This document shows positions 1,750 through 55,618 of a stretch of 64,000 nucleotides of DNA, piece by piece; within the stretch, counting starts at the first letter, position 1; each line of letters begins with the position of its first letter. The notes below the pieces were generated by a model. That model did no database searches. It saw only the letters and a list, made by a program, of their open reading frames with translations, and had not been told where the DNA came from. A program made the position numbers and the translations under genes. The DNA is taken from the NCBI RefSeq assembly GCF_030028105.1, contig NC_092401.1, forward strand, positions 7,722,984-7,786,983. Reading direction: 5' to 3'. Origin of the DNA: Mobula birostris (lineage: Eukaryota).

Positions 1750-2000
1750 CAATCTCATGGATCAAAGTCGTATACAGCCTGGACGTACGAAGCCTGATAC
1801 GGTGGTAGAGGCAAGGACATTGGATGCTTTTAAGGGACATTTGGATAGGCACATGGATGTACTGAAAGGAAAATGGAAGGATATGGACATTGTGTAGGTA
1901 GGAGAGATCAGCGTTTGGGTGTTTTTTGATTTACTTTTCAGCTGTTTTGGCACAATATTGTGGGACGAAGGGCCTGTTCCTGTGCTGTATTCTTCTGTGT
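1750..2000 (+). mobile_element. CR1-type LINE 3' fragment
   Basis: cttttaagggacatttggataggcacatggat...gaagggcctgttcctgtgctgta, the CR1 3' end that recurs through the window. Confidence 0.7.
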
Positions 2001-22304: not shown

Positions 22305-24455
22305 TTAAAGGTAGGGTGAGATGCATCCTTGATAATATTTTTCACTCTGCCCAGGCAGCATTTATGGTAGATGTTCTCAATGGTGGGCAACTGGGTGCCA
22401 ATAATCTGCTGGGCTGTTATCACCACCCGCTGGAGTCCTTTGCAGTCTGATACAGGACAATTGCCATACCACACTGAGATGCAGTTGGTGAGTATACTCT
22501 CAATGGTACAACAGTAAAAGTCTGTCAGTATCCCGGGACAGAGGTGAGCTTTCTTGATGCTCCGCAGGAAATACGTTGCGCCTTTTTGATCAGGATGGAG
22601 GAGTTCAGGGACCAGGTGAGATCATCGGAAATGTGGACACCAAGGAATTTGAAGCTTGATACACACTCCACTACAGCTCCGTTGATGTAAATGGGGATGT
22701 GAGTGTGGCCCTAACATGCCTGAAGTGCACAATGATCTCCTTGGTCTTCTGGGTGTTAAAGGCCAGGTTTTTGTTGGCACACCACGCGGCCAGGTGCTGG
22801 ACCTCATCCCTGTAGGCCATCTCGTCATCCCCTCTGATCAGACAAGCCGCCGTGGTGTTATCTGCGAATATTGATTATGGAATTAGAACCATGTACAGGA
22901 GCGCAGTCATAGGTGAAAAGGAAGTACAGAAGAGGGCTCAGCATGCAGCCTTGAGGCACGCTGGTGTTCAGGTTGAGAGTGGAGGAGGAGAGGTTGTCTA
23001 ACTTAACAGATTAGTGTCTGTTAGTCAGGAAGCTCAAGGTCCAATTGCAGAGGGATGAGCTGATACCAAGCTGGTGAAGTTTAGCGATCAGCTAGGAGGG
23101 GATCACAGTACTGAATGCTGAACTAAAGTCAATGAACAGCATTCTGACGTAAGAGTTGGGGCTGTCCAGGTGGGTCAGGACAAAGTGAAGTGCGGTGGAG
23201 ATGGTGACCTCTGTTGACCTGTTGGTGCAATAGGCAAATTGATGGGGGTCCAGGGTAGTGGGCAGACAGGATTTCAGATGTGATAGAACCAGTTTCTCAA
23301 AGCTCTTTGCAATGATGGGGGTGAGTGCAACTGGGTAGAAGTCATTCAGGCCCGTGGCAGTGGAATGCTTTGGTACTGGCACGATTGTGGCGATCTTGAA
23401 GCTTGTGGGGACAACTGCCTGGGCCAGGGACAGGTTAAAAATGTCCATGAAGACCCTAGCCAATTGCCTTACTCAGACTCTAAGCACACAGCCAGGTATT
23501 CCATCTGGACCAGCTGCCTTCCATGCATTCACCCTGCTCAAGGTGGCACAAACATCGCAGGTGGAAAGTGAGAGAGGCAGTTCACCAGGTGGGAGATCCA
23601 CTTTGAGGGTGACCTCCTTGTTCTCTCGGTCAAAGCGAGTGTAGAAGTAATTGAGCTCATCAGGGAGGGAAGCAGAGCTGGAAGGGGGCACAGTACTAGG
23701 TGGTTTGAAGTCTGTAATAATCTGTATGCCATGCCACATGCACCGGGGGTCCGAGGAGTTGAAATGCTCCTCGATTCTCTGTTTGTATATGTGCTTAGCC
23801 TGAGAGATTCCCCTCCTCAGGTTGGCCCTGGCTGAGCTGTAACCCTCCTGCTCTCCAGACCTGAAGGCTGAATCTCTCTGTTCATCCAGGGTTTCTGATT
23901 GGGGAAAAGTTTTATTTGTTTTTGTGATGTCACTCTATCTACACACTTGTTGATGTGCTCAAGGACAGAGCTGGAATTGGTGCTGAAGAGCAGAGTCAGC
24001 ACCCTCCAGCCAGATCTTAATAGTCTTCATTGTGGGTTTCACACGTTTAATGACCGGGCTATACTTGGGAAGCAGAAACAGTGAAAGATGGTCGGACTGT
24101 CCCAGGTGGGGCAGGGTAGTGGCGTCAGCCACATTTGTGTAGATATGATCTAAGGTTTTATTTCCCCTTGTGGTGCATGATACATTTTGGTAAAATCTTG
24201 GAAGCACGGTACGTAGGTTGCAATGATTAAAGTCCCCAGCAACAATAAAGGCTCCGTCTGGATGCAATGTCTGCAGCTTGCTAATAGCGACACTGAGGTC
24301 TTTCATGGCTACTTTAGCATTAGCATCCGGTGGTACATAAACTGCGACAGCAATGATGCATGTAAACTCTCGTGGTTCATAAAAAGGTCTGCACTTAATA
24401 ATCAGGTATTCCAGGTCAGCAGAGCAGTAAGTGTCAGCAATGGTAGACATTCCAG
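22305..24455 (-). mobile_element. Rex1/Babar-type LINE, degenerate EN+RT
   Basis: KCRPFYEPREF...AGDFNH endonuclease; [12 protein letters not shown]...[11 protein letters not shown] segments. Confidence 0.85.
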
Positions 24456-24545: not shown

Positions 24546-24678
24546 NNNNNNNNNNNNNNNNNNNNNNNNNNNNNNNNNNNNNNNNNNNNNNNNNNNNNNN
24601 NNNNNNNNNNNNNNNNNNNNNNNNNNNNNNNNNNNNNNNNNNNNNNNNNNNNNNNNNNNNNNNNNNNNNNNNNNNNNN
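24546..24678. other. Assembly gap (133 N) hiding the 3' end and donor of the D4 exon
   Basis: N run. Confidence 1.
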
Positions 24679-33231: not shown

Positions 33232-34860
33232 AGAACTTAGAACTATGCTGGAAAATCTATAGCACAATACAGGCCCTTCGGCCCACAATGCTGTGCGAAA
33301 CATGTACTTACTTAGAAATTATCTAACGTTACCAATAAAGGTTACCAATAGTCCTCTATTTTCCTAAACTCCATGTCCCTATCCAGGAGACTCTTAAAAG
33401 ACCCTATCGTATCCACCTCCACCACCATTGCTGTCAGCCCATTCCACACACTCAGCACTCCTGGGGGGGAGGGGGGGGGACTTACCCCTGACATCCCCTC
33501 TGTACCTACTTCCAAGCACCTTAAAACTGTGTACTCTCATGTTAGCCATTTCATCCCTGGGGAAAAAGCCTCTGACTAATCCACATGATGAATACCACTC
33601 ATGATCTTATACACCTCTTTCAGGTCACCTCTCATCCTCTGCTGCTGCATGGAGAAAAGGCAGAGTTCACTCAACCTATTCTCATAAGGCATGCTCCCCA
33701 ATCCAGGCAACGTCCTTGTAAATCTCCTCTACACCCTTTCTATGGTTTCCACATCCTTCCTGTAGTGATGTGACCAGAACTGAGCACAGTACTCCAAGTG
33801 GGGTCTGACCAGGGTCCTAGATAGCTGTAACATTACCTCTCGCCTCCTAAACTCAATCCCACGATTGGTGAAGGCCAAGCAACACATGCCTTCTTAACCA
33901 CAGAGTCAACCTGTGCAGCAGTTTTGGGTGTCCTATGGACTTAGAACCCAAGATCCCTCTGATCCTCTACACTGCCAAGAGTCTTACTATTAATACTATA
34001 TTCTGCCATCATACTTGACCTACCAAAATGAGCCACCTCACACTTACCTGGGTTGAATTCCATCTGACACTTCCCTGCCTGGTTTGCATCGTATCAATGT
34101 CCCACTGTAACCTCTGACAGCCCTCCACACTATCCACAACACACCCAACCTTTGTGTCATCAGTAAATTTACTAACCCATCCCTCCACTTCCTCATCCAG
34201 GTCATTTCTAAAAATCACCAAGAGTAGGGGTCCTAGAACAGATCCCTGAGGTACACCACTGGTCACTGACCTCCATGTAAAATATGACCCATCGACATCC
34301 ACTCTTTGCCTTCTGTGGGAAAGCCAATTTTGGATCCACAAAGAAAGGTTCCCTTGGATCCCATGTCTCCCTACTTTCTCAATAAGCCTTGCATTGGGTA
34401 CCTTATCAAATGCCTTGCTGAAATCCATATACACTACATCTACTGCTCTACCTTCATCAATGTGTTTAGTCACATCCTCAAGAAATTCAATCAGGCTCGT
34501 AATTGCATGACCTGCCTTTGACAAAGCTATGCTGACTATTCCTAATCATATTATACCTCTCCAAATGTTCATAAATTCTGCCTCTCAGGGTCTTTTCCAT
34601 CAACTTACCAACCACTGAAGTAAGACTCACTCGTCTATAATTTCCTGAGCTTTCACTGATCCCTTTCTTGGATAAGGGAACAACATCTGCAACCCTCCGG
34701 AACTTCTCCCATCCCCATTGATGATGCAAAGATCATTGCCAGAGGCTCAGCAATCTCTCCCCTCGCCTGGGGTACATCTCATCTGGTCCTGGAGACTTAG
34801 CCAATTTGATGCTTTCCAAAAGCTCTAACACATCCTCTTTTTTAATATCCATATGCTCAA
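33232..34860 (-). mobile_element. CR1-type LINE, 5'-truncated
   Basis: VDVVYMDFSKAFDKV...GVPQGSVLGP...KFTDDTK RT; (gttcta)n tail. Confidence 0.9.
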
Positions 34861-40617: not shown

Positions 40618-40948
40618 CAGTCGGCTCCTTATCCACGGGGGATTGGTTCCGGGACCCCCCACGGATACCAAAAAACATGGATGCTCAAGTCCATTATATA
40701 AAATGGCGTAGTATTTACATNNNNNNNNNNNNNNNNNNNNNNNNNNNNNNNNNNNNNNNNNNNNNNNNNNNNNNNNNNNNNNNNNNNNNNNNNNNNNNNN
40801 NNNNNNNNNNNNNNNNNNNNNNNNNNNNNNNNNNNNNNNNNNNNNNNNNCTCAAACAATGTGTGCTGGAGAGAGAACCTCCAGATTTTCCTGATCCGCAG
40901 TTGCCTGAATCCGCACATGCGGAACCCACGGATAAGGAGGGCTGACTG
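40618..40948. mobile_element. MER2-like Tigger MITE containing a 129-N gap (40721-40849)
   Basis: TA|CAGTCGGCTCCTTATCC...GGATAAGGAGGGCTGACTG|TA. Confidence 0.85.
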
Positions 40949-44510: not shown

Positions 44511-46889
44511 AATTTGTTCACCAATGTCTATGCAGTTAGTTGCCTGCACCCCATTTCAATCTCCACACAATATAAATGTTTGTTAGTATAACAATGCCCT
44601 TTTCACATTAAAACAAAAAATATTGTCAGTCATCAGATCGTAAAGATACCACCGACTTCTAACACAAGTGGGTCTGTAGTGAAGATCTGTTTTCTAGGGA
44701 TGTCCAAACTAAAGGAAAGAACAATATCACGGAATAGTGCCAGAGAGCGGAGACATTTTGTGTGCAGCTCCCATTTCAATTATCGAGTATTCTTGTTTAA
44801 AACTGAACAGCTGAAATCTGCAGCCACAGACACTGCAGTTAGCAACATTGTTGAAAGTCCATCTCCTTGGCATTACGCGGGAGGGTGGGGGGTGGGTGGG
44901 GAACAGTGGGGGCTGGCTGGCTGCACAGAAGAGATTCATCAGGACCGGCGAGGCTCCAGATGGCTATGGATCAAGAGGTGAGACCCGTGGACCAGTGCTG
45001 CTGGGACACAAACCAGAGGCTATCGAACAAATGACGTAGTTCAAAGTGCTTTACACTGTGACAGAAGTACGAATATGAAGATAAAATAAAAGTAAACATG
45101 TCAGTAAAAGACAAAAAGATGTTGGTTAAGAGCAAGCTACATTAAATAGGTTTTGAGTTGTTATTTAAAAGTGTCAACTGTATCTGTACCCCTTATACTT
45201 TTAGGGACTGAATTCCACAGTTTATGAGCCTATTTTTTAAGCTGACCTGCCAATTATCTTTTGAGGGAGATTGTTTAAATTTCGGCAGAAGAAGACCTGA
45301 GAGCTTGGCAGAATTAAAAACGAAAGAGATTCTGTGATGTTCTCTAGTCCTAGACCATTTAAGAACAAGTAAGAGACTTTAAAAATAAATTGTAAATTGT
45401 ACAGGAAACCAATGCAGAATAGCTAGTATAGGAGTGATATGTTCCCTCATCCTGGTTTTTGGTAACAGTGGTGCTCTGACTGAGCTGAAGTTTGTCAGTA
45501 GATTGCTTTGGAAGGCCAGTGAAAAGTACATAGCAGTAATTTAGTCTTTTTGATGTAAGTGTTGCTGTGCCAGAGGAGATTGTTCACACATTGTGGTCAG
45601 TGGTCTGATACTCTCAGTGGCCACTTTATTCAGCACACCTGGACACCTGTTCATTAATGCAAATATCTAATCAGTGCAGAAACACAATGCATAAAAGCAT
45701 GTAGACATTGTCAAGAGGGCATGTCTGTCCCCCATCAGGAGGGTCTTAAAGCTCTCTGCTTCTTTCTGAACATCAGACCTGATCAGCTCCTCTCCATCAC
45801 CAATCTCCTCCATTCTCCTGAACTGGTCGTCACCTTCAATAATTTCTCATTTAGGTCCTCCCACTTCCTTCAAACCCAAGGTATAGCCATCTGCAGTCAC
45901 ATGGGTCCCAGCTATGCCTGCCATAACCGCCACCATCTCTAATGGGATCTCACCACCAATCACATCTTTCCATCCCCCTGACTTACCACAGGGACTGCTT
46001 CCTATGTGACTCCCTTGTCTACTCCTCCCACCCTATCAATCTCCCTCCTGCTAAATATCCTTGCACGTGGAATTAGTGCCTCACCTGCCCCTACACCTCC
46101 TCCCTCACTACCATCCGGGGCTCTGAACAATCCTTCAACACTTCACCTGTGAGTCTGTTGGAAGTCATCTACTGTATCTGGTGCTCCCAGTGTGGCCTCC
46201 CGTATATCAGCGAGACCTGACATAGGTTGGGAATCCACTTCATCGAGCACTTCACTCTGTGCACCACAGAAAGTGGAATTTCCCAGTGGCCACCCTTTTC
46301 AATTCTACTTTCCATTCCCATTCTGACATGTCAGTCCTTGGTCTATTCTACTGTCATGATGAGACCATACTCAAGTTGGAGGAGCAGCACCTAATATTCT
46401 GTCTGGGGTTCCTCCAACCTGTTGGCATGAACATCAATTTCTTGAACTTATGGTAATTGCACCCATCCTCTCCTTCAACGTTCCCCATTCTTGCTTCCTT
46501 CCAACACATTCTCTTCTTACTTGCCCATCATCTCCCTCTGGTTTCCCTTCCCCTTCCATTTCTTCCAAGGCCTTCGATTCTCTCCTATCAGATCCGATTC
46601 GGAGAAGTGCACAGACGCAGTCGCTCATCATCACACAAGGCCACTGAGAAGGTTCCGGGATAAAAAAGGAGTTACTGTCTAGTGGAGCATTTTCGGAGCA
46701 GCCTGAGTCAAGAGTAGTAGGGCTTTGATTCATCAGGGTTTCTGCAAGGATGGATCTAGGTGAGGTAAGGAGGTAAGTTACTTTCATATCTCTTTTTACC
46801 TCTAACTTAAGAATAGTGGATATGACTGCAAGGCCAGTTTTCTGCTCTGGGTGTCAGATGTGGGATATCCAGGAGACTTCCAGCCTCCC

Positions 46890-47860
46890 TACAATATATA
46901 TTAATGATTTAGATGAGGGAATTAAAAGTAACCTTAGCAAATTTGGTGATGACACAAAGCTGGGTGGCAGTGTGAAATGTGAGGGGGATGTTATGAGAAT
47001 GCAGGGTGACTTGGACAGGCTGGGTGAGTGGGCAGATTCATGGCAGATGCAGTTTAATGTGGATAAATGTGAGGTTATCCACTTTGGTGGTAAGAACGGG
47101 AAGGCAGATTATTATCTAAATGGAGTCAAGTTAGGAAAAGGGGAAGGACAACAAGATCTAGGTGTTCTTGTACATCAGTCACTGAAAACAAGCATGCAAG
47201 TACAGCAGGCAGTGAAGAAAGCTAATGGCATGCTGGCCTTCATAACAAGGGGAATTGAGTATAAGAGCAAAGAGGTCCTTCTGCAGCTGTACAGGGCCCT
47301 GGTGAATCCACACCTGGAGTACTGTGTGCAGTTTTGGTCTCCAAACTTGAGGAAGGACATTCTTGCTATTGAGGGAGTGCAGCGTAGGTTCACAAGGTTA
47401 ATTCCCGGGATGGCCGGACCGTCATATGTCGAAAGATTGGAGCGACTGGGCTTGTATACTCTGGAATTTAGAAGGCTGAGAGGAGATCTGATTGAAACAT
47501 ATAAGGTTATTAAGGGATTGGACACGCTGGAGGCAGGAAGCATGTTCCCGCTGATGGGTAAGTCCAGAACTCAGAGGCCACAGTTTAAGAATTAGGGGTA
47601 AGCCATTTAGAACGGAGTTGAGGAAAAGCTTTTTCACCCAGAGAGTGGTGGATATATGGAATGCTCTGCCCCAGAAGGCTGTGGAGGCCAAGTCTCTGGA
47701 TGGTTCAAAAAAGAGATGGATAGAGCTCTTAAAGGTAGCAGAAACAAAGGTTATGGGGATTAGGCAGGAACTGGATACTGATAGTGGATGATCAGCCATG
47801 ATCACCGTGAATGGTGGTGCTGGCTCAAAGGGCTGAATGGCCTACTCCTGCACCTATTGT
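46890..47860 (+). mobile_element. CR1 3' fragment inserted in ORF1 of the host CR1
   Basis: IYINDLDEG...KFGDDTK...LEYCVQFWSP open for ~235 codons; splits the ORF1 sequence. Confidence 0.85.
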
Positions 47861-48854: not shown

Positions 48855-50240
48855 ACCAATGACATAGGGAGAAAAAGGGAGGAGGTCCTGAAAACAGAAT
48901 ACAGGGAGCTAGGAAGGAAGCTGATAGAGGAGGTATTTAATGAATACTTTGCTTCAGTATTCACCTGCATAAAAGACCTATGCAATTATGGGGATGACTT
49001 ACAGCGGACTAAAATATTTGAGCATATAGACATTAAAAGAGAGGATGTACAGGAGCTTTTGAAAAAGCATTGTTAGATAAGTCACCGGGACCGGATGAGA
49101 TATATCTCAGGCTACTGTGGGAAGCAAGGGAGGAGATTGCTGAGCCTCTGGCGATGATCTTTGCATCATCAATAGAGATGGGAGAATTACCAGAGGACTG
49201 GTGGGTTGCAAATGTTGTTCCCTTTTTCAAGAAAGGGAGCAGAAATAAGCCAGGAAATTATAGACCAGTGAATGTTACTTCAGAGGTGGGCAAGTTGTTG
49301 GAGAATATCCCGAGAGGCAGGAATTATGAGCATTTAGAGAGATATAATCTGATTAGGGATAGTCAGCATAGCTTTGTCAAGGACAGCTCATGCCTTATGA
49401 GGCTGATTAAATTCTTTGAGGATGTAACAAAAGACATTGATGCAGGAAGAGCAGTGAATGTGGTGTATATGGATTTCAGTAAGGCATTTAATAAGGTTCC
49501 CCAGGTGAGGCTCATTCACAAAGTGTGGAGGCATGGGATCCAAGGGGACCTTGCTTTGTGGATCCAGAATTGGCTTGCCCACAGAAGGCAAAGGGTGGTT
49601 GTAGATAGTTTGTATTCTGCATGGTGGTCGGGGAGCAGTATTGTTCCGCAGGGATCTGTTCTGGGACCCCTGCTCTTTGTGATTTTTATAAATAACCTGG
49701 ATGAAGAAGTAGAAGGGTGGGTTAGCAAGTTTGCTGATGACACAAAAGTTGGGGGTGTTGTGGATAGTCTAGTGGGTTGTCAGAGGTTACAGCGGGACAT
49801 CGAAAGGATGCAGAACTGGGCTGAGAAATGGCAGATGGAGGTCAACCCAGGTAAATGTGAAGTGGTTCATTTTTGTAAGTCAACTATGATAGCAGAATAT
49901 AGTATTAATGGTGCCTCTTGGTAGTGTAGAGGATCAGAGAGATCTCGGGGTCGTGCCCATAGGATACCCAAAGCTGATGTGCAGGTTGACAGTGTTGTTA
50001 AGAAGACGTATGGTGTGTTGGCATTCATCAGCCATGAGACTGAGTTCAAGAGCCGTGAGGTAATGTTACAGCTGTATAAGACCATGGGCAGACCCCATTT
50101 GGAGTTCTGTGTTCAGTTCAGGTCACCTCACTACAGGAAGGATTTGGATACTATAGAGAGAGTGCTGGGGAGATTTACAAGGATGTAATTTGGATTGGAG
50201 AGCATGCCTTATGAGAATAGATTGAGTGGAACTTGGTTTT

Positions 50241-51189
50241 AGTTATACGGTGGGTCGTTGATTGCGGATCCAAATGCAGCACACAGACAATGAAGTACTA
50301 GGTACAGGACAAGGTTTATCAAGGAGGCAAGGGGAGTCAGGAAGAAACGATGCTGGACATGGACACAGGCCCTAGAAAAGACAAGGACACTGGGCCTGAG
50401 CTAGGACTAAGACTAGGAAAGCGGGACCAGGACAAGTAACTCGGAACTAGGAGCCTGGGCTGGGACTCCGAGCCAGAGAATGGACAGGGACCTGGAACCT
50501 GGGTCTTCACTCGGGCTCGGACCTCGGATCTAGGCGAGGACAAGATGTGGCTATAGGACTGGACGTGGCTAGGTTACAGAACTGGACATGGAAATCTTGC
50601 ACAGGACGAGGCACATGAACAGGATGAGGTTCTTGGACGTGGCTTGGTCTAGGGACTCCTGGACTGGACGAGGGATCTCCAGCACAGGGTGAGGGATCTC
50701 CAGCACAGAGTGAGGGATCACTAGGGCTGGGTGAGGGTTCTCCAGGGCTGGTCGAGGTACTCCTGGGCTGAGCGTGGAACTCCAGGGCAGGACTTGGCTC
50801 TTGGATTAGGCTAGGCTCGGCTCTTGGACTCGGCTCGGTTAACCTCTTGGGTACAGAGCCAGGGCTCCTTCTTGGAGCGCAGAGCTGGGAGCCTCTTGAG
50901 ACACAGGGCCGGGACCCTTTCTAGGACGCAGGGCCGGGATGACTGCCGAGGATACTTGCCTTGGTAAACTGCCAAGGTAACTGTCGGGGATTTGGATGGG
51001 GAGGGGAAGGGATCTGTCCAGCGAAAGAGGCTGAATCCCGAAGCTATTTATGTAGCCAGCCTGAAACTAGAATCAGGTGCCTCAAGTAAGGAGCCCAGTG
51101 GAACCGGGGAAAACAGGGAAAACCCAGAATACAGATCGATGGACTGGACCGTGAATGGGAATGCACACTTCACTGACCGGACCATGACA
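50241..51189 (-). mobile_element. Solo LTR, same family as 6408-7607
   Basis: Both ends match the 6408 LTR in reverse complement; flanked by ggtttt on both sides; splits the CR1. Confidence 0.85.
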
Positions 51190-51580
51190 GGTTTTTTTTC
51201 TTCTTGGTGCGATGGACGATGGGAGATAACCTGGAAGAGGTGTACAGAATGATGAGAGGCATTGATCATGTCGATAGCCAGCGGCTTTTTCCCAGGTTTG
51301 AAATGTCTGACACAAGGGGGTATAGTTTTAAAGTGTTTGGAAGTAGGTACAGAGAGGACATCAGAGTTAAGTTATTCACACAGAGAGTGGTGGGTGTGTG
51401 GAACGCACTGCCAGCAATGGTGGCGGAAGTGGATACATTAGCTTTTATAAGTGACTGTCAGATAGAGCTGAGAAAAATAGAGGGCCATGCTGTAGGGTAA
51501 TTCCAGGCAGTTTGTAGAGGAGGTTAGATGGTTGGCACAATATTGTGGGCTGAAGGGCCTGTAATGTGCCGTAGATTTCT

Positions 51581-54507
51581 TTTCAAATCTTTTTATTATT
51601 ATATTATTCAAAAATAACACGAGTACATCGAAGTAAGCAACACTTACAATGTCTCAAGAAAAAAAACATTATTTTAAAGATTGAAAAATTTTGGTGATAA
51701 TAAAGAAACCCTACTAAGCAGAAAAAGTTTGGGGGGAGGAACCCCATTAGGTGCACAACCCCAGAGCTATGCATCATACAAAAAGCTTCTAAAGATAAAC
51801 ATCAAACTGCCAGCAAGAAAAAAAATATACCAAAAATTTACAATTAGATCATGGAGGAAATCTATCAATGAACTCAAATGATAATGAGCAAATGAGCCTC
51901 ATCTTTTCTCAAAAAATAGAGGTTCAAAGGTTCGACTTCTAATATTCTCCAAACTAAGACATAGCATGACTTGAAAGAACCATTGTGATAAAGTGGGAGC
52001 TGATGTATCCTTCCACTTCAACAAAATGGCCCCCCTAGCTATCAATGTAACAAATACAATAACATGTTGGTCAGACACAGAGTTACCATGGATATTTTGA
52101 GGAATTATTCCAAAAAGCAGAGTTAATTTGTTAGGCTGTACATTAATTTTTAATGCTTTAGAAATTGTCGAAAGAACTGACTTCCAGAACTGTTCCAATA
52201 TAGAACAAGACCAAAACGTGTGTCAGTGTAGCTGTCACAGTTTTACATCTATCACAATAACTATCAACATTAGGAAATATTTTAGACAGTCTCTCATTCG
52301 TCAAATAGTAATGATGTACAATTTTAAATTGAATCAGCGAATGACTAGGGCAGATCAAAGAAGAGTTAACCAGCTTCAGAATCCACGTCCAGTCCTCCGT
52401 CATAAAAGTCAAATTGAGTTCCTTTTCCCAATCTTATTTAATCTTAAATAAAGGACAGTTATCGCATTGTAATAATAAATTAGAAATTCTTCCAATAGAA
52501 CCCTTCGTCGAAGGGTTCATACTCATAACAGATCAGCCTCCAATATGTAAGGAAAATTACTTAAACATTTTTGTAAGAAATGTCTAACTTGAAGGTATCG
52601 TAAAAAGTGTGAATATGAAAGAGAATATTTATCAACTAATTATTCGAAAGGCATTGATCTAGCTCCTTTAAATAAATCCAAAAAAGAATTAATACATTTA
52701 TTTTTCCGAAGTAAAAAAATTGGATCACGCAAAGGAGGTTTAAAAAAAGTAATTTCGATAAATTAAACTACAAAGTTTAAATTTTTTTAAGATTAAAAAA
52801 ATTGTGGATCTGGAGCCAAATTTGTAAAGAATGCTTAATCTCAGGGTATAGGTTTAAATTAGCAACTTCAGCTAATTGTATAGGTAAAGCAACTCCCAAT
52901 AACGAGGTTAAATAAAACTGTTTCACAGCTTTCAATTCCAGGTCTACCCAAATTGGCCGATCGTTCTTATCAACCCAATATAACCAAAAGGACATGTATC
53001 GTCTACCAAGGGAATGAAATTGGCTTTATAAAGATCCTTATTTTTTTTGTGATTATAACACCCAAATATCTAAAAGAATCCGTGAATTTGAAAGGAGTAT
53101 TATCATATATAGAAATCGATTCATTTGAAGGAAACAATTCACTTTTACTAAAATTTATTTTATATCCTGAAAAATGTCCAAATTCATTGAATAATTTTAG
53201 CAAGGCAGGAATAGAATTTTTTCTTTTTAATGATATAGGGGTGGGTCCAAATTAATTATATGGGATACATTTAAAGCATTTTTACGTGGTCAGATCATTT
53301 CTTATTCAGCTAAGCTTAATAAACAGACTAAAGTAGAATTAGATAAGATTTCAAAATAAATTAAAGACAGATAGTATTTATGCAATTTCCCCTGATATGG
53401 ATTTATTCCAGCAAAGGGTGGAACTTCAATGAGAATGTAACCTATTACTAACTCATCCCATTGAAGGCTATTTGCTTAAGTTAAAGAGCCAGTTTTATAT
53501 GTTTGGAGATAAAGATAACAAACTGCTCTCATCTCAATTAAAAACGGCTGGAGCCAAAAGGCAAATTTTGAAAATTCGGAGGAAAGGTGGTACCCTGGCT
53601 TGGGAATATGAAGAAATTAATAAGATTTTTCAAGATTTTTATACTGAACTTTATAAATCTCAATGTCCAGTAGATTCTTCTGAAATGAATGCTTTCTTAC
53701 GAAAGATTGCTATTCCTAAAATTTCTGTTAAGGATTAAAAAACTCTTGATGCCCAAATTACTGAAGCCGAAATTCATAAAGCTTATTTTTCAATGCAAAC
53801 AGTTAAGGCCCCTGGACTTGATGGCTATCCTGTAGAATTTTATTAAAAATTTGGAAAATTGCTTTCTCTGTATATGTTGGAAATGTTTAAGGATTCTTTT
53901 GTGAAAGGTGATTTACCTTTTACTTTCTATGAGGATTCTATTTCTGTAATTCTTAATAAAGATCCTACTGACTGTGCATCATATAGACCTATTTCATTAT
54001 TGAATGTCGATGCAAAGGTTCTGTCAAAGATAATGGCCAATTGGTTGGAGAATAGTTTGAGTAAAATTATTTTTAAAGATCAAACAGGCTTTATAAAGGG
54101 TCGCTATTCTTTTTCAAATGCTCGGAGACTATTGAAAATTATATATTCGTCCTCTTCTAAAACTCCACAGTGCGGCGTCCCTTTGGATGCTGTAAAAGCT
54201 TTCGATCGAGTCGAATGGAAATATTTATTTAATGTTTTAGGGAAATATGTTTTGGTGTTAATTTTAATAACTGGATTGGAATGATACAGTATATAAAGCT
54301 CCTATGGCTACTGTTGTCACTAACAACTGTAGGTCTCCTTTTTTTCAGCTTTCACGGGGGACAAGACAAGGTTGTCCATTAAGTCCTTTGTTACTTAATT
54401 TAATATTAGAACCCCTTGCTATTGCTCTTCGTGAAGCTAAAAATATTCATGGGATTTTTTTGTGAATGAGACCATTCATAAGATTTCTCTTTACGCTGAC
54501 GATTTAT
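51581..54507 (-). mobile_element. L1-clade insertion with 5' inversion (3' part 51581-53240 on minus, inverted part 53246-54507 on plus)
   Basis: 16-bp TSD tgtgcYgtagatttct (51565-80, 54508-23); plus part ends at YADDLL, minus part starts just after it; AATAAA and A-rich tail. Confidence 0.9.
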
Positions 54508-55618
54508 TGTGCTGTAGATTTCTATGTTCTATTCCCCCTTCTCTAGCCCCTTATCTCTTCCCCAAATCAACTTCCCAACTCCTTACTTCACCCTTCCCCC
54601 TCTCCCGGTTTCACCTGTCAGCTGCCACCTTGTGCTTCTTCTGACGTCTCCCCTTCCTTCCCAGACCTGATGAAGGGTCTCAGCCTGAAAGGTTGACTGT
54701 TTAATCATTTATGTCGATGCATCCTGTCCTGTTGAGTTCCCCCAGCATTTTGTGCGTGTTGCCAGAGGCTCAGTGGTTGTTTAAACCAACCAACAGAATG
54801 CGAAAAAGGCGTGGTCGAAGTGACTTGGACCATAGAATGAGATGGTTTGAGTATCTCAGAAACTGCTGATCTCCTGAGAATGTTGCAAAAAGAATCAACA
54901 ACTAGGTGCGCAGCTGTTCTGTGGGTGAAAAAGATTTGTTCATGAGGTAAGAGGAGAATAACCAGTCTGGTTCATGCTGACTGAAGGCGACAGTAATTCG
55001 AATAACCACACATTACAACAGTGGTGTGCAGAAAAGACAACATGTCGAACCTTGAGATGGATAGGCTGCAACGCAGAGGAACGCGAGCATACACTCAGTT
55101 GCCAGGGAGGTAAGTGATAAAGTGGACAACAAACAAAAACTGGTCAAATTGTATCTGAGATCATTTGAATCTTGGCGACTGATCCACAGTTTTACGCTCG
55201 GACGGGGAGTCGGAATGAATCACCAAGAGACATGTGGTCTGTAACATAGCAGCCCGTGCCCAGTCTTCAATACTGAACATGGGAGTAGAGAGCAGTAACC
55301 GTGAAACAAAATGTGACGTTTCCCACATCATGGGCGTGTAAGATTCATTAAATGTGAAGCTGTTTTAAAGCGAATTGTGCCCATTATTCCCTATTTTTGT
55401 CTCCCTACCCATTCTGCAGTTGAAGTACAAATCAATCTGAAATTTCTCTTTTGTTCTGCCAAGCCAAAGACGACGAATAAAAACAGGAAATGAGTTACGG
55501 TCCGCAGAATAAAGCACACAACGCAAAAGTACACAGTTACTAAGTACAGTTACCATTTAATACTTGACCCCGCGTAAATACGTGTATATTGAATATCTTT
55601 AAAAGACACTGAACCTAC

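Follow-up and report, generated by a model that had tools for sequence, protein, structure and literature searches.

Twin priming, with its second, internal priming event, is a textbook mechanism for the human long interspersed nuclear element (LINE) L1, and it has been documented almost entirely for L1 elements of mammals. Here we describe an L1 copy in the ray Mobula birostris that very probably arose by this mechanism. The copy lies in a stretch of 64,000 nucleotides (nt) from contig NC_092401.1 (assembly GCF_030028105.1, forward strand, positions 7,722,984 to 7,786,983). This whole stretch is called the window, and all positions given below are counted from its first letter.

Twin priming of human L1 is credited to Ostertag and Kazazian (2001), as cited in PMC2912911 and PMC4245944. 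Copies with an inverted 5' part make up ~30% of the lineage-specific L1 copies of humans and chimpanzees (PMC2912911). Among these 5'-inverted copies, microhomology is found at the 5' junction in ~95% and measures 2-5 bp in ~70%, extra nucleotides are rare (3.9%), and the lengths of target-site duplications (TSDs) peak at 14-16 bp (PMC2912911). The 5'-inverted L1 insertions recovered in cell culture have TSDs of 10-20 bp, and long TSDs have been tied to second priming (Yamaguchi et al. 2014, PMC4245944). In that work, 5' inversions were produced almost exclusively by human L1 in human cells, and once with Nimb-2_DR; neither human L1 in chicken DT40 cells nor zebrafish ZfL2-1 gave any, and the authors concluded that 5' inversion is governed by the LINE and by the host alike (PMC4245944). 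A paper on LINEs of Anolis cites the twin-priming paper for 5' truncation only. Our search of the literature on zebrafish, fish and non-mammalian LINEs, in which subscription journals were thinly covered, yielded no account of a fish L1 that underwent twin priming. This outcome fits an earlier annotation of the window (the original prediction), which had called such copies seldom reported in fishes.

The insert in the window is a dead L1 copy of ~2.9 kb whose 5' part is inverted. As in the 5'-inverted L1 copies of human and chimpanzee, a TSD of ~15 bp surrounds both segments, and the 3' segment, which bears the tail, stands at one copy of the TSD. The outer end of the inverted segment likewise precedes the start of the 3' segment in the element, and the 5' junction has short microhomology and no extra nucleotides. 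The ray copy differs from those of human and chimpanzee in its host, which is a cartilaginous fish, and in its type, which is a fish-type L1 with ~45-60% reverse transcriptase (RT) identity to its closest named relatives. It differs also in that its tail is A/T-rich, its arms abut without detectable deletion or duplication, and six bases stand at its inner junction. The insertions described in PMC4245944 share with the ray copy the occurrence of 5' inversion alongside a TSD of 10-20 bp. However, they arose de novo in cultured cells, whereas the ray copy is a fossil left in a genome by a native L1 of a non-mammalian germ line. The ray copy is well formed and is an ordinary outcome of a known mechanism, found here in an unusual host.

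The L1 fragment occupies positions 51581-54509 (2,927-2,929 nt). It is AT-rich, and the composition step at its edges is sharp, with 32% GC inside and 49% in the flanks. Its two arms lie on opposite strands, and each was mapped on its own to natural proteins. The plus-strand arm (53246-54509) is the inverted 5' segment, delimited by tblastn, by the Pfam profile RVT_1, by alignment to human ORF2p (the protein of open reading frame 2, ORF2) and by the end of a family contig. It is decayed: its translation leads from '..SKLIIWDTFKAFLRGQIISYSAK' to 'KISLYADDLL' through several stops and frameshifts. Its ORF2 coding sequence extends from '..SKLIIWDTFKAFLRGQIISY', in the linker that follows the endonuclease domain, to YADDLL at 54509. 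The minus-strand arm (51581-53239) is the non-inverted 3' segment, delimited by tblastn, RVT_1, human ORF2p and a count of residue spacing. Its first residues are 'PISLKRKNSIPALLKLFNEFGHFSGYKINFSKSE' at 53239, and the rest of the RT and a putative C-terminal Cys/His motif follow, interrupted by many stops and many frameshifts. The 3' part of this arm is a 3' untranslated region (UTR) of ~275 nt and an A/T-rich tail (51581-51612, minus strand) that adjoins the left TSD copy at 51581 and ends, in the sense direction, with ..AATAATATAATAATAAAAAGATTTGAAA. The last 32 nt of the tail in sense comprise 18 A, 11 T, 3 G and 0 C (56% A, 34% T).

Between the arms lie six junction bases, GGTGGG (53240-53245), which are either filler or diverged 5'-most bases of the inverted segment. 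The original prediction had described a reverse-complemented 5' segment followed by a direct 3' segment, and all of these structural elements are present, with coordinates slightly refined. It had also placed junction bases at 53238-53245. The spacing count described below limits the bases in question to the 6 nt at 53240-53245. Because the copy has no ORF1, no endonuclease domain and a split RT, it was dead on arrival, and it has decayed further since.

At a resolution of one codon, the two arms are neighboring parts of a single ORF2; they do not overlap, and between them no codon is missing or present twice. They are assigned adjacent positions because a full-length relative, the RVT_1 profile, the spacing of conserved residues and contigs of uninverted copies all place them side by side. 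The full-length relative is the ORF2 protein P0010 (Xyrichtys novacula CAJ1062856.1, 1269 amino acids), which is named LINE-1 reverse transcriptase-like and contains an APE-type endonuclease and an RT. In tblastn alignments, the plus-strand arm corresponds to P0010 residues 293-715 (53246-54509) and the minus-strand arm to residues 724-1242 (53215-51938). The eight codons at 53239-53216, which blast leaves unaligned, fill residues 716-723. The outer end had been predicted to stop at YADDLL and the 3' part to resume at the next residues; these points correspond to P0010 residues 715 and 716.

The RVT_1 profile is covered at positions 4-93 and 108-145 by the plus-strand arm and at positions 159-205 by the minus-strand arm. 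On human ORF2p, a 141-amino-acid piece of the plus-strand arm corresponds to residues 491-620. Residue 716 of the human protein aligns with residue 11 of the minus-strand arm, whose residue 1 would therefore fall at ~706, adjoining the FADD box, which occupies residues 700-703. The distance from the DD of YADD to the S[IV]P column is exactly 10 residues in 37 of 38 aligned reference ORF2 proteins. Here the spacer is made up of LL from the plus-strand arm (two residues) and PISLKRKN from the minus-strand arm (eight residues), which also gives 10.

Public contigs of four organisms were aligned to the window. In two other organisms, contigs of uninverted family copies connect position 54509 with 53215 on opposite strands (three contigs from X1 and three from X5), and a family contig match stops exactly at 54509. 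The inversion point, for which the original prediction had raised the prospect of a break in contiguity, is thus one at which the arms abut at the codon level. A repeat comparison of the arms found no inverted duplication between them: the longest inverted repeat is 18 nt at 83% identity, and self-blastn gave none.

One TSD of 16 bp surrounds both arms. Its left copy, TGTGCCGTAGATTTCT (51565-51580), lies within the 3' UTR of an older LINE that hosts the insert, and its right copy, TGTGCTGTAGATTTCT (54508-54523), differs from the left by one C/T transition. This pair is the top direct repeat between the two 60-nt neighborhoods of the insert ends, and a separate repeat search recovered the same pair independently, with a spacing of 2943. 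The 16-bp TSD had been part of the original prediction; it is found at both ends, and 0 of 2000 shuffles yielded 16 bp with at most one mismatch.

The empty site can be read from related copies of the host LINE. Two paralogous host tails in the window, at 33253-33306 (minus strand) and 1947-1977 (plus strand), are uninterrupted and read ..GGGCCTGT..TGTGCTGTA..TCT.TGTTCT. Host-family contigs pass from 51565/51566 to 54512/54511 and omit 2944-2946 nt, where the insert plus one TSD copy amounts to 2943 nt. Moreover, hundreds of contigs whose match ends at 51580 go on with ATGTTCTATGTTCTAT, which is the sequence that follows the right TSD copy (54524). Loose contig ends after 51580 read ATGTTCTATG, consistent with a continuous host-repeat tail. 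Because the paralogues and contigs run straight across the site and omit the insert, the insertion site is ..CCTGTAA/TGTGCTGTAGATTTCT/ATGTTCT.., and the first nick falls at ATTTCT/A on the plus strand. The nicked site, on the plus strand of the window, reads 5'-ATTTCT/ATG-3'.

At the outer junction, L1 homology reaches 54509, one base past the TSD start at 54508. The right TSD copy therefore opens with the two bases that close the Leu codon TTG (54508-54509), a 2-nt microhomology (TG) taken to mark where the second priming occurred, and no extra nucleotides are present. On its own the TG match is weak, as two or more matching bases are expected by chance in ~1 of 16 cases. Beyond the TSD, the target reads TAA (51562-51564) and the L1 reads TAT (54505-54507), so that four of five bases match (TA-TG) around the second priming site. 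This match may have aided annealing, or it may be due to chance. At the inner junction, GGTGGG has no convincing match to reference proteins when read from either arm.

The whole insert is very probably the result of a single L1 retrotransposition event resolved by twin priming. When the part that bears the tail is read in sense, a TSD copy comes first and antisense ORF2 (residues 715 to 293) second; past the junction, ORF2 continues in sense from residue 716 as far as the tail, and the other TSD copy closes the order. Twin priming is favored because this order, within one TSD, matches its predicted product. The original prediction had arrived at the same reading, which gains from the single TSD around both arms, the arm with the tail at the TSD, the adjacent positions of the arms, the TG microhomology and the 16-bp length of the TSD.

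The anatomy of the insert suggests how the event may have proceeded. The L1 endonuclease would have nicked the plus strand at 5'-ATTTCT/ATG-3' in the 3' UTR of the older LINE, and the T-rich 3' end so freed would have served as the primer for reverse transcription of the L1 RNA, starting on its A/T-rich tail. The opposite strand would then have been cut 16 nt away, which would permit the overhang ...CAGCACA-3' to pair its CA with UG in the last Leu codon of YADDLL on the same RNA. Extension of this second primer toward the 5' end of the RNA would have given a complementary DNA (cDNA) of ~1.26 kb, halting in the linker after the endonuclease domain. The first cDNA would have been extended for ~1.66 kb and would have halted at the codon beside the second priming site. 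The two cDNA ends would finally have been joined at 53240-53245 and the gaps filled.

Measures of composition and decay bear on whether the two arms have a common origin. The arms have GC contents of 31.2% and 32.6% and observed/expected CpG ratios of 0.57 and 0.54. The pooled mismatch to family contigs, among the contigs listed, is 13.8% for one arm and 12.4% for the other. Contig depth, when arranged by element coordinates, shows a steady climb that starts in the inverted segment, goes on in the 3' segment and reaches into the 3' UTR, which is expected of one family that is subject to 5' truncation. These values are consistent with a single RNA as the source of both arms.

The same arrangement could be obtained if a 5'-truncated L1 had inserted on the minus strand first and the 5' 1.26 kb of it had been turned around in place by a later chromosomal inversion. 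If one breakpoint lay at the 5' junction and the other directly behind YADDLL, such an inversion would yield the observed order, and bases 53240-53245 could be the repair scar. However, one breakpoint would have to fall by chance within ~2 nt of the boundary between L1 and TSD, there are no inverted repeats to mediate the exchange, and the combination of TG microhomology with a 16-bp TSD is the published pattern for twin priming (PMC2912911, PMC4245944). We therefore consider a later inversion very unlikely. Even more unlikely is an origin in two independent events, in which a truncated minus-strand L1 was joined by a separate plus-strand fragment through nested insertion or DNA-repair capture. 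DNA of this L1 family is very abundant, and neighboring fragments are not rare in general. Yet the plus-strand arm has no 3' end, tail or TSD of its own, a single TSD encloses both arms, and the arms abut to the codon. By a rough estimate for a 6-kb element, two fragments would abut within ~10 nt with a chance of ~0.3%. The match in composition and decay between the arms also speaks against separate events.

An assembly artefact, in which two L1 fragments were misjoined or one was flipped in a repeat-rich region, has to be considered because the family is high in copy number and no listed public contig spans the junctions of the locus. However, a misassembly would not yield matching host-repeat flanks with a 16-bp duplication, nor would it make the flipped segment stop one codon short of where the other arm begins in the element, and we regard it as highly improbable. 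We give practically no weight to fold-back or snap-back synthesis, whether in the manner of Penelope-like insertions or by switching of the RT onto its own cDNA, as the source of two inverted arms. Snap-back yields inverted duplicates, whereas the arms here represent two distinct segments that adjoin in the element, any inverted repeat between them is no better than chance, and the RT is of the L1 type rather than the Penelope type. This route is excluded because the arms share no sequence.

Several observations weigh against an origin by twin priming, or limit what can be drawn from it. The target, TTCT/A, only approximates TTTT/A. The original prediction had cited a T-rich target and an A-rich tail as fitting the priming reaction. 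The nick at ATTTCT/ATG and the A/T-rich tail agree with this in part, but the tail is not clean poly(A). The six bases at 53240-53245 could be either filler or diverged bases of the inverted segment. The contiguity of the arms is established at the level of the codon, against proteins that are only 45-60% identical and a contig joint at which ~24 nt are unaligned, and an indel in the A-rich stretch 53216-53232 could move the count by one codon. The measures that tie both arms to the same subfamily (GC, CpG and mismatch) are coarse. Because none of the contigs listed bridges either junction of this locus, the assembly at the insert is not independently confirmed. Finally, one case gives no information on how frequent such copies are.

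The RVT_1 profile matches pieces of both arms (E 6e-14). Among PDB sequences, the L1 RT matches human L1 ORF2p only (E 3e-21), and the top of 17,207 library matches consists of fish L1 ORF2 proteins. Because of these matches, the element is assigned, from its protein similarities, to a fish-type lineage of the L1 clade, and its own family has no representative in the protein collections. In a protein collection clustered at 90%, the 141-amino-acid RT piece has no relative above 62% identity, and a search for homologous proteins with the 78-amino-acid piece at the junction gave no match. The closest match (61% identity) is an L1-derived stretch in P0001, a predicted protein of the stingray Hypanus sabinus (XP_059838364.1). 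All named L1 relatives are from fishes, with H. sabinus the closest, and the host repeat is a CR1/L2-like LINE; a non-mammalian genome, as originally predicted, is thus likely.

The window copy resembles the fish L1 ORF2 proteins P0010, P0152 (Hucho hucho A0A4W5P8L2) and the L1 part of P0001, whose order is endonuclease, linker, RT and C-terminal Cys/His motif, in its own order of linker, RT and putative Cys/His motif. It also has in common with fish L1 ORF2 proteins the motifs WDTFKA..RG.IISY, YADDLL and S[IV]P..L...F....SGYK.N..KSE. However, its identity to P0010, P0152 and P0001 is 45-61%, so none of these belongs to the same family. Unlike its fish relatives, the window copy has neither an endonuclease domain nor ORF1 and is full of stops. 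The Exo_endo_phos domain is present in the full-length relatives P0010 and P0007, and the window copy begins after this domain (P0010 residue 293). The putative Cys/His motif of the minus-strand arm, as read from the translation, is CDRCKTVTATLTH, a frameshift and TFWSC (CDRC..H, ..FWSC). The zf-RVT profile matches this arm with E 4e-4 and 21.3 bits, which is under the Pfam cut-off of 27.5.

The public contigs show that at least four sequenced organisms carry the L1 family in great abundance. Within the window, self-blastn of the insert found no second copy of the family, and the matches that tblastn gave elsewhere, at 22840-23661, 34213-34846 and 49079-49858, are all to RT fragments of unrelated LINEs. 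A 16-mer from the junction-proximal minus-strand arm is shared with 119 metagenome loci. We attribute these matches to chance, as none of the loci has any further similarity to the insert. The RefSeq model for P0001 is called 'E3 ubiquitin-protein ligase E3D isoform X2', with L1 ORF2 (WDTFKAYIRGQIISY.. through the RT) at residues ~22-354 of 362. This protein is probably an exonised or mis-predicted L1 fragment.

The host LINE (49070-51564, plus strand) includes an RT with FADDTK (RVT_1 E 7e-25), a C-terminal ORF at 51204-51500 and a 3' UTR. From its motifs, we take it to be CR1/L2-like. Its tail, of the (ATGTTCT)n type, picks up again past the insert, at 54524-54545. The host LINE is older than the L1 insert, which interrupted it near its 3' end. 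This LINE is extremely abundant in public runs, and contig depth is highest in the bins that flank the insert. Many host-family contigs omit ~120-144 nt between ~51400 and ~51545, which suggests that the 3' UTR of the host LINE has a variable block at ~51400-51545.

Other parts of the window contain decayed LINE RT fragments at 46816-47595 (plus strand), 22840-23661 (minus strand) and 34213-34846 (minus strand). These are not L1, because their identity to L1 ORF2 is only 21-24%. The first of them is an ORF of 259 amino acids with FGDDTK and looks to be of the same CR1/L2-like kind as the host LINE. The window also has runs of N at 24546-24678 (133 bases) and 40721-40849 (129 bases).

The ray copy provides a natural data point, which indicates that second, internal priming also occurs outside mammals. 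Taken alone, it is one fossil and changes no principle, and its value would be higher if such copies proved to be common genome-wide. We propose tentatively, at somewhat less than an even chance, that twin priming regularly accompanies the retrotransposition of native L1 in the germ lines of elasmobranchs. If this is true, a sizeable share of the TSD-flanked copies in the abundant ray family would be 5'-inverted. Although cell culture of human L1 in chicken cells suggested a tie to mammalian host factors, twin priming would in that case have no such tie and would be an ancient feature of the L1 machinery, with its long staggered cuts and internal priming.

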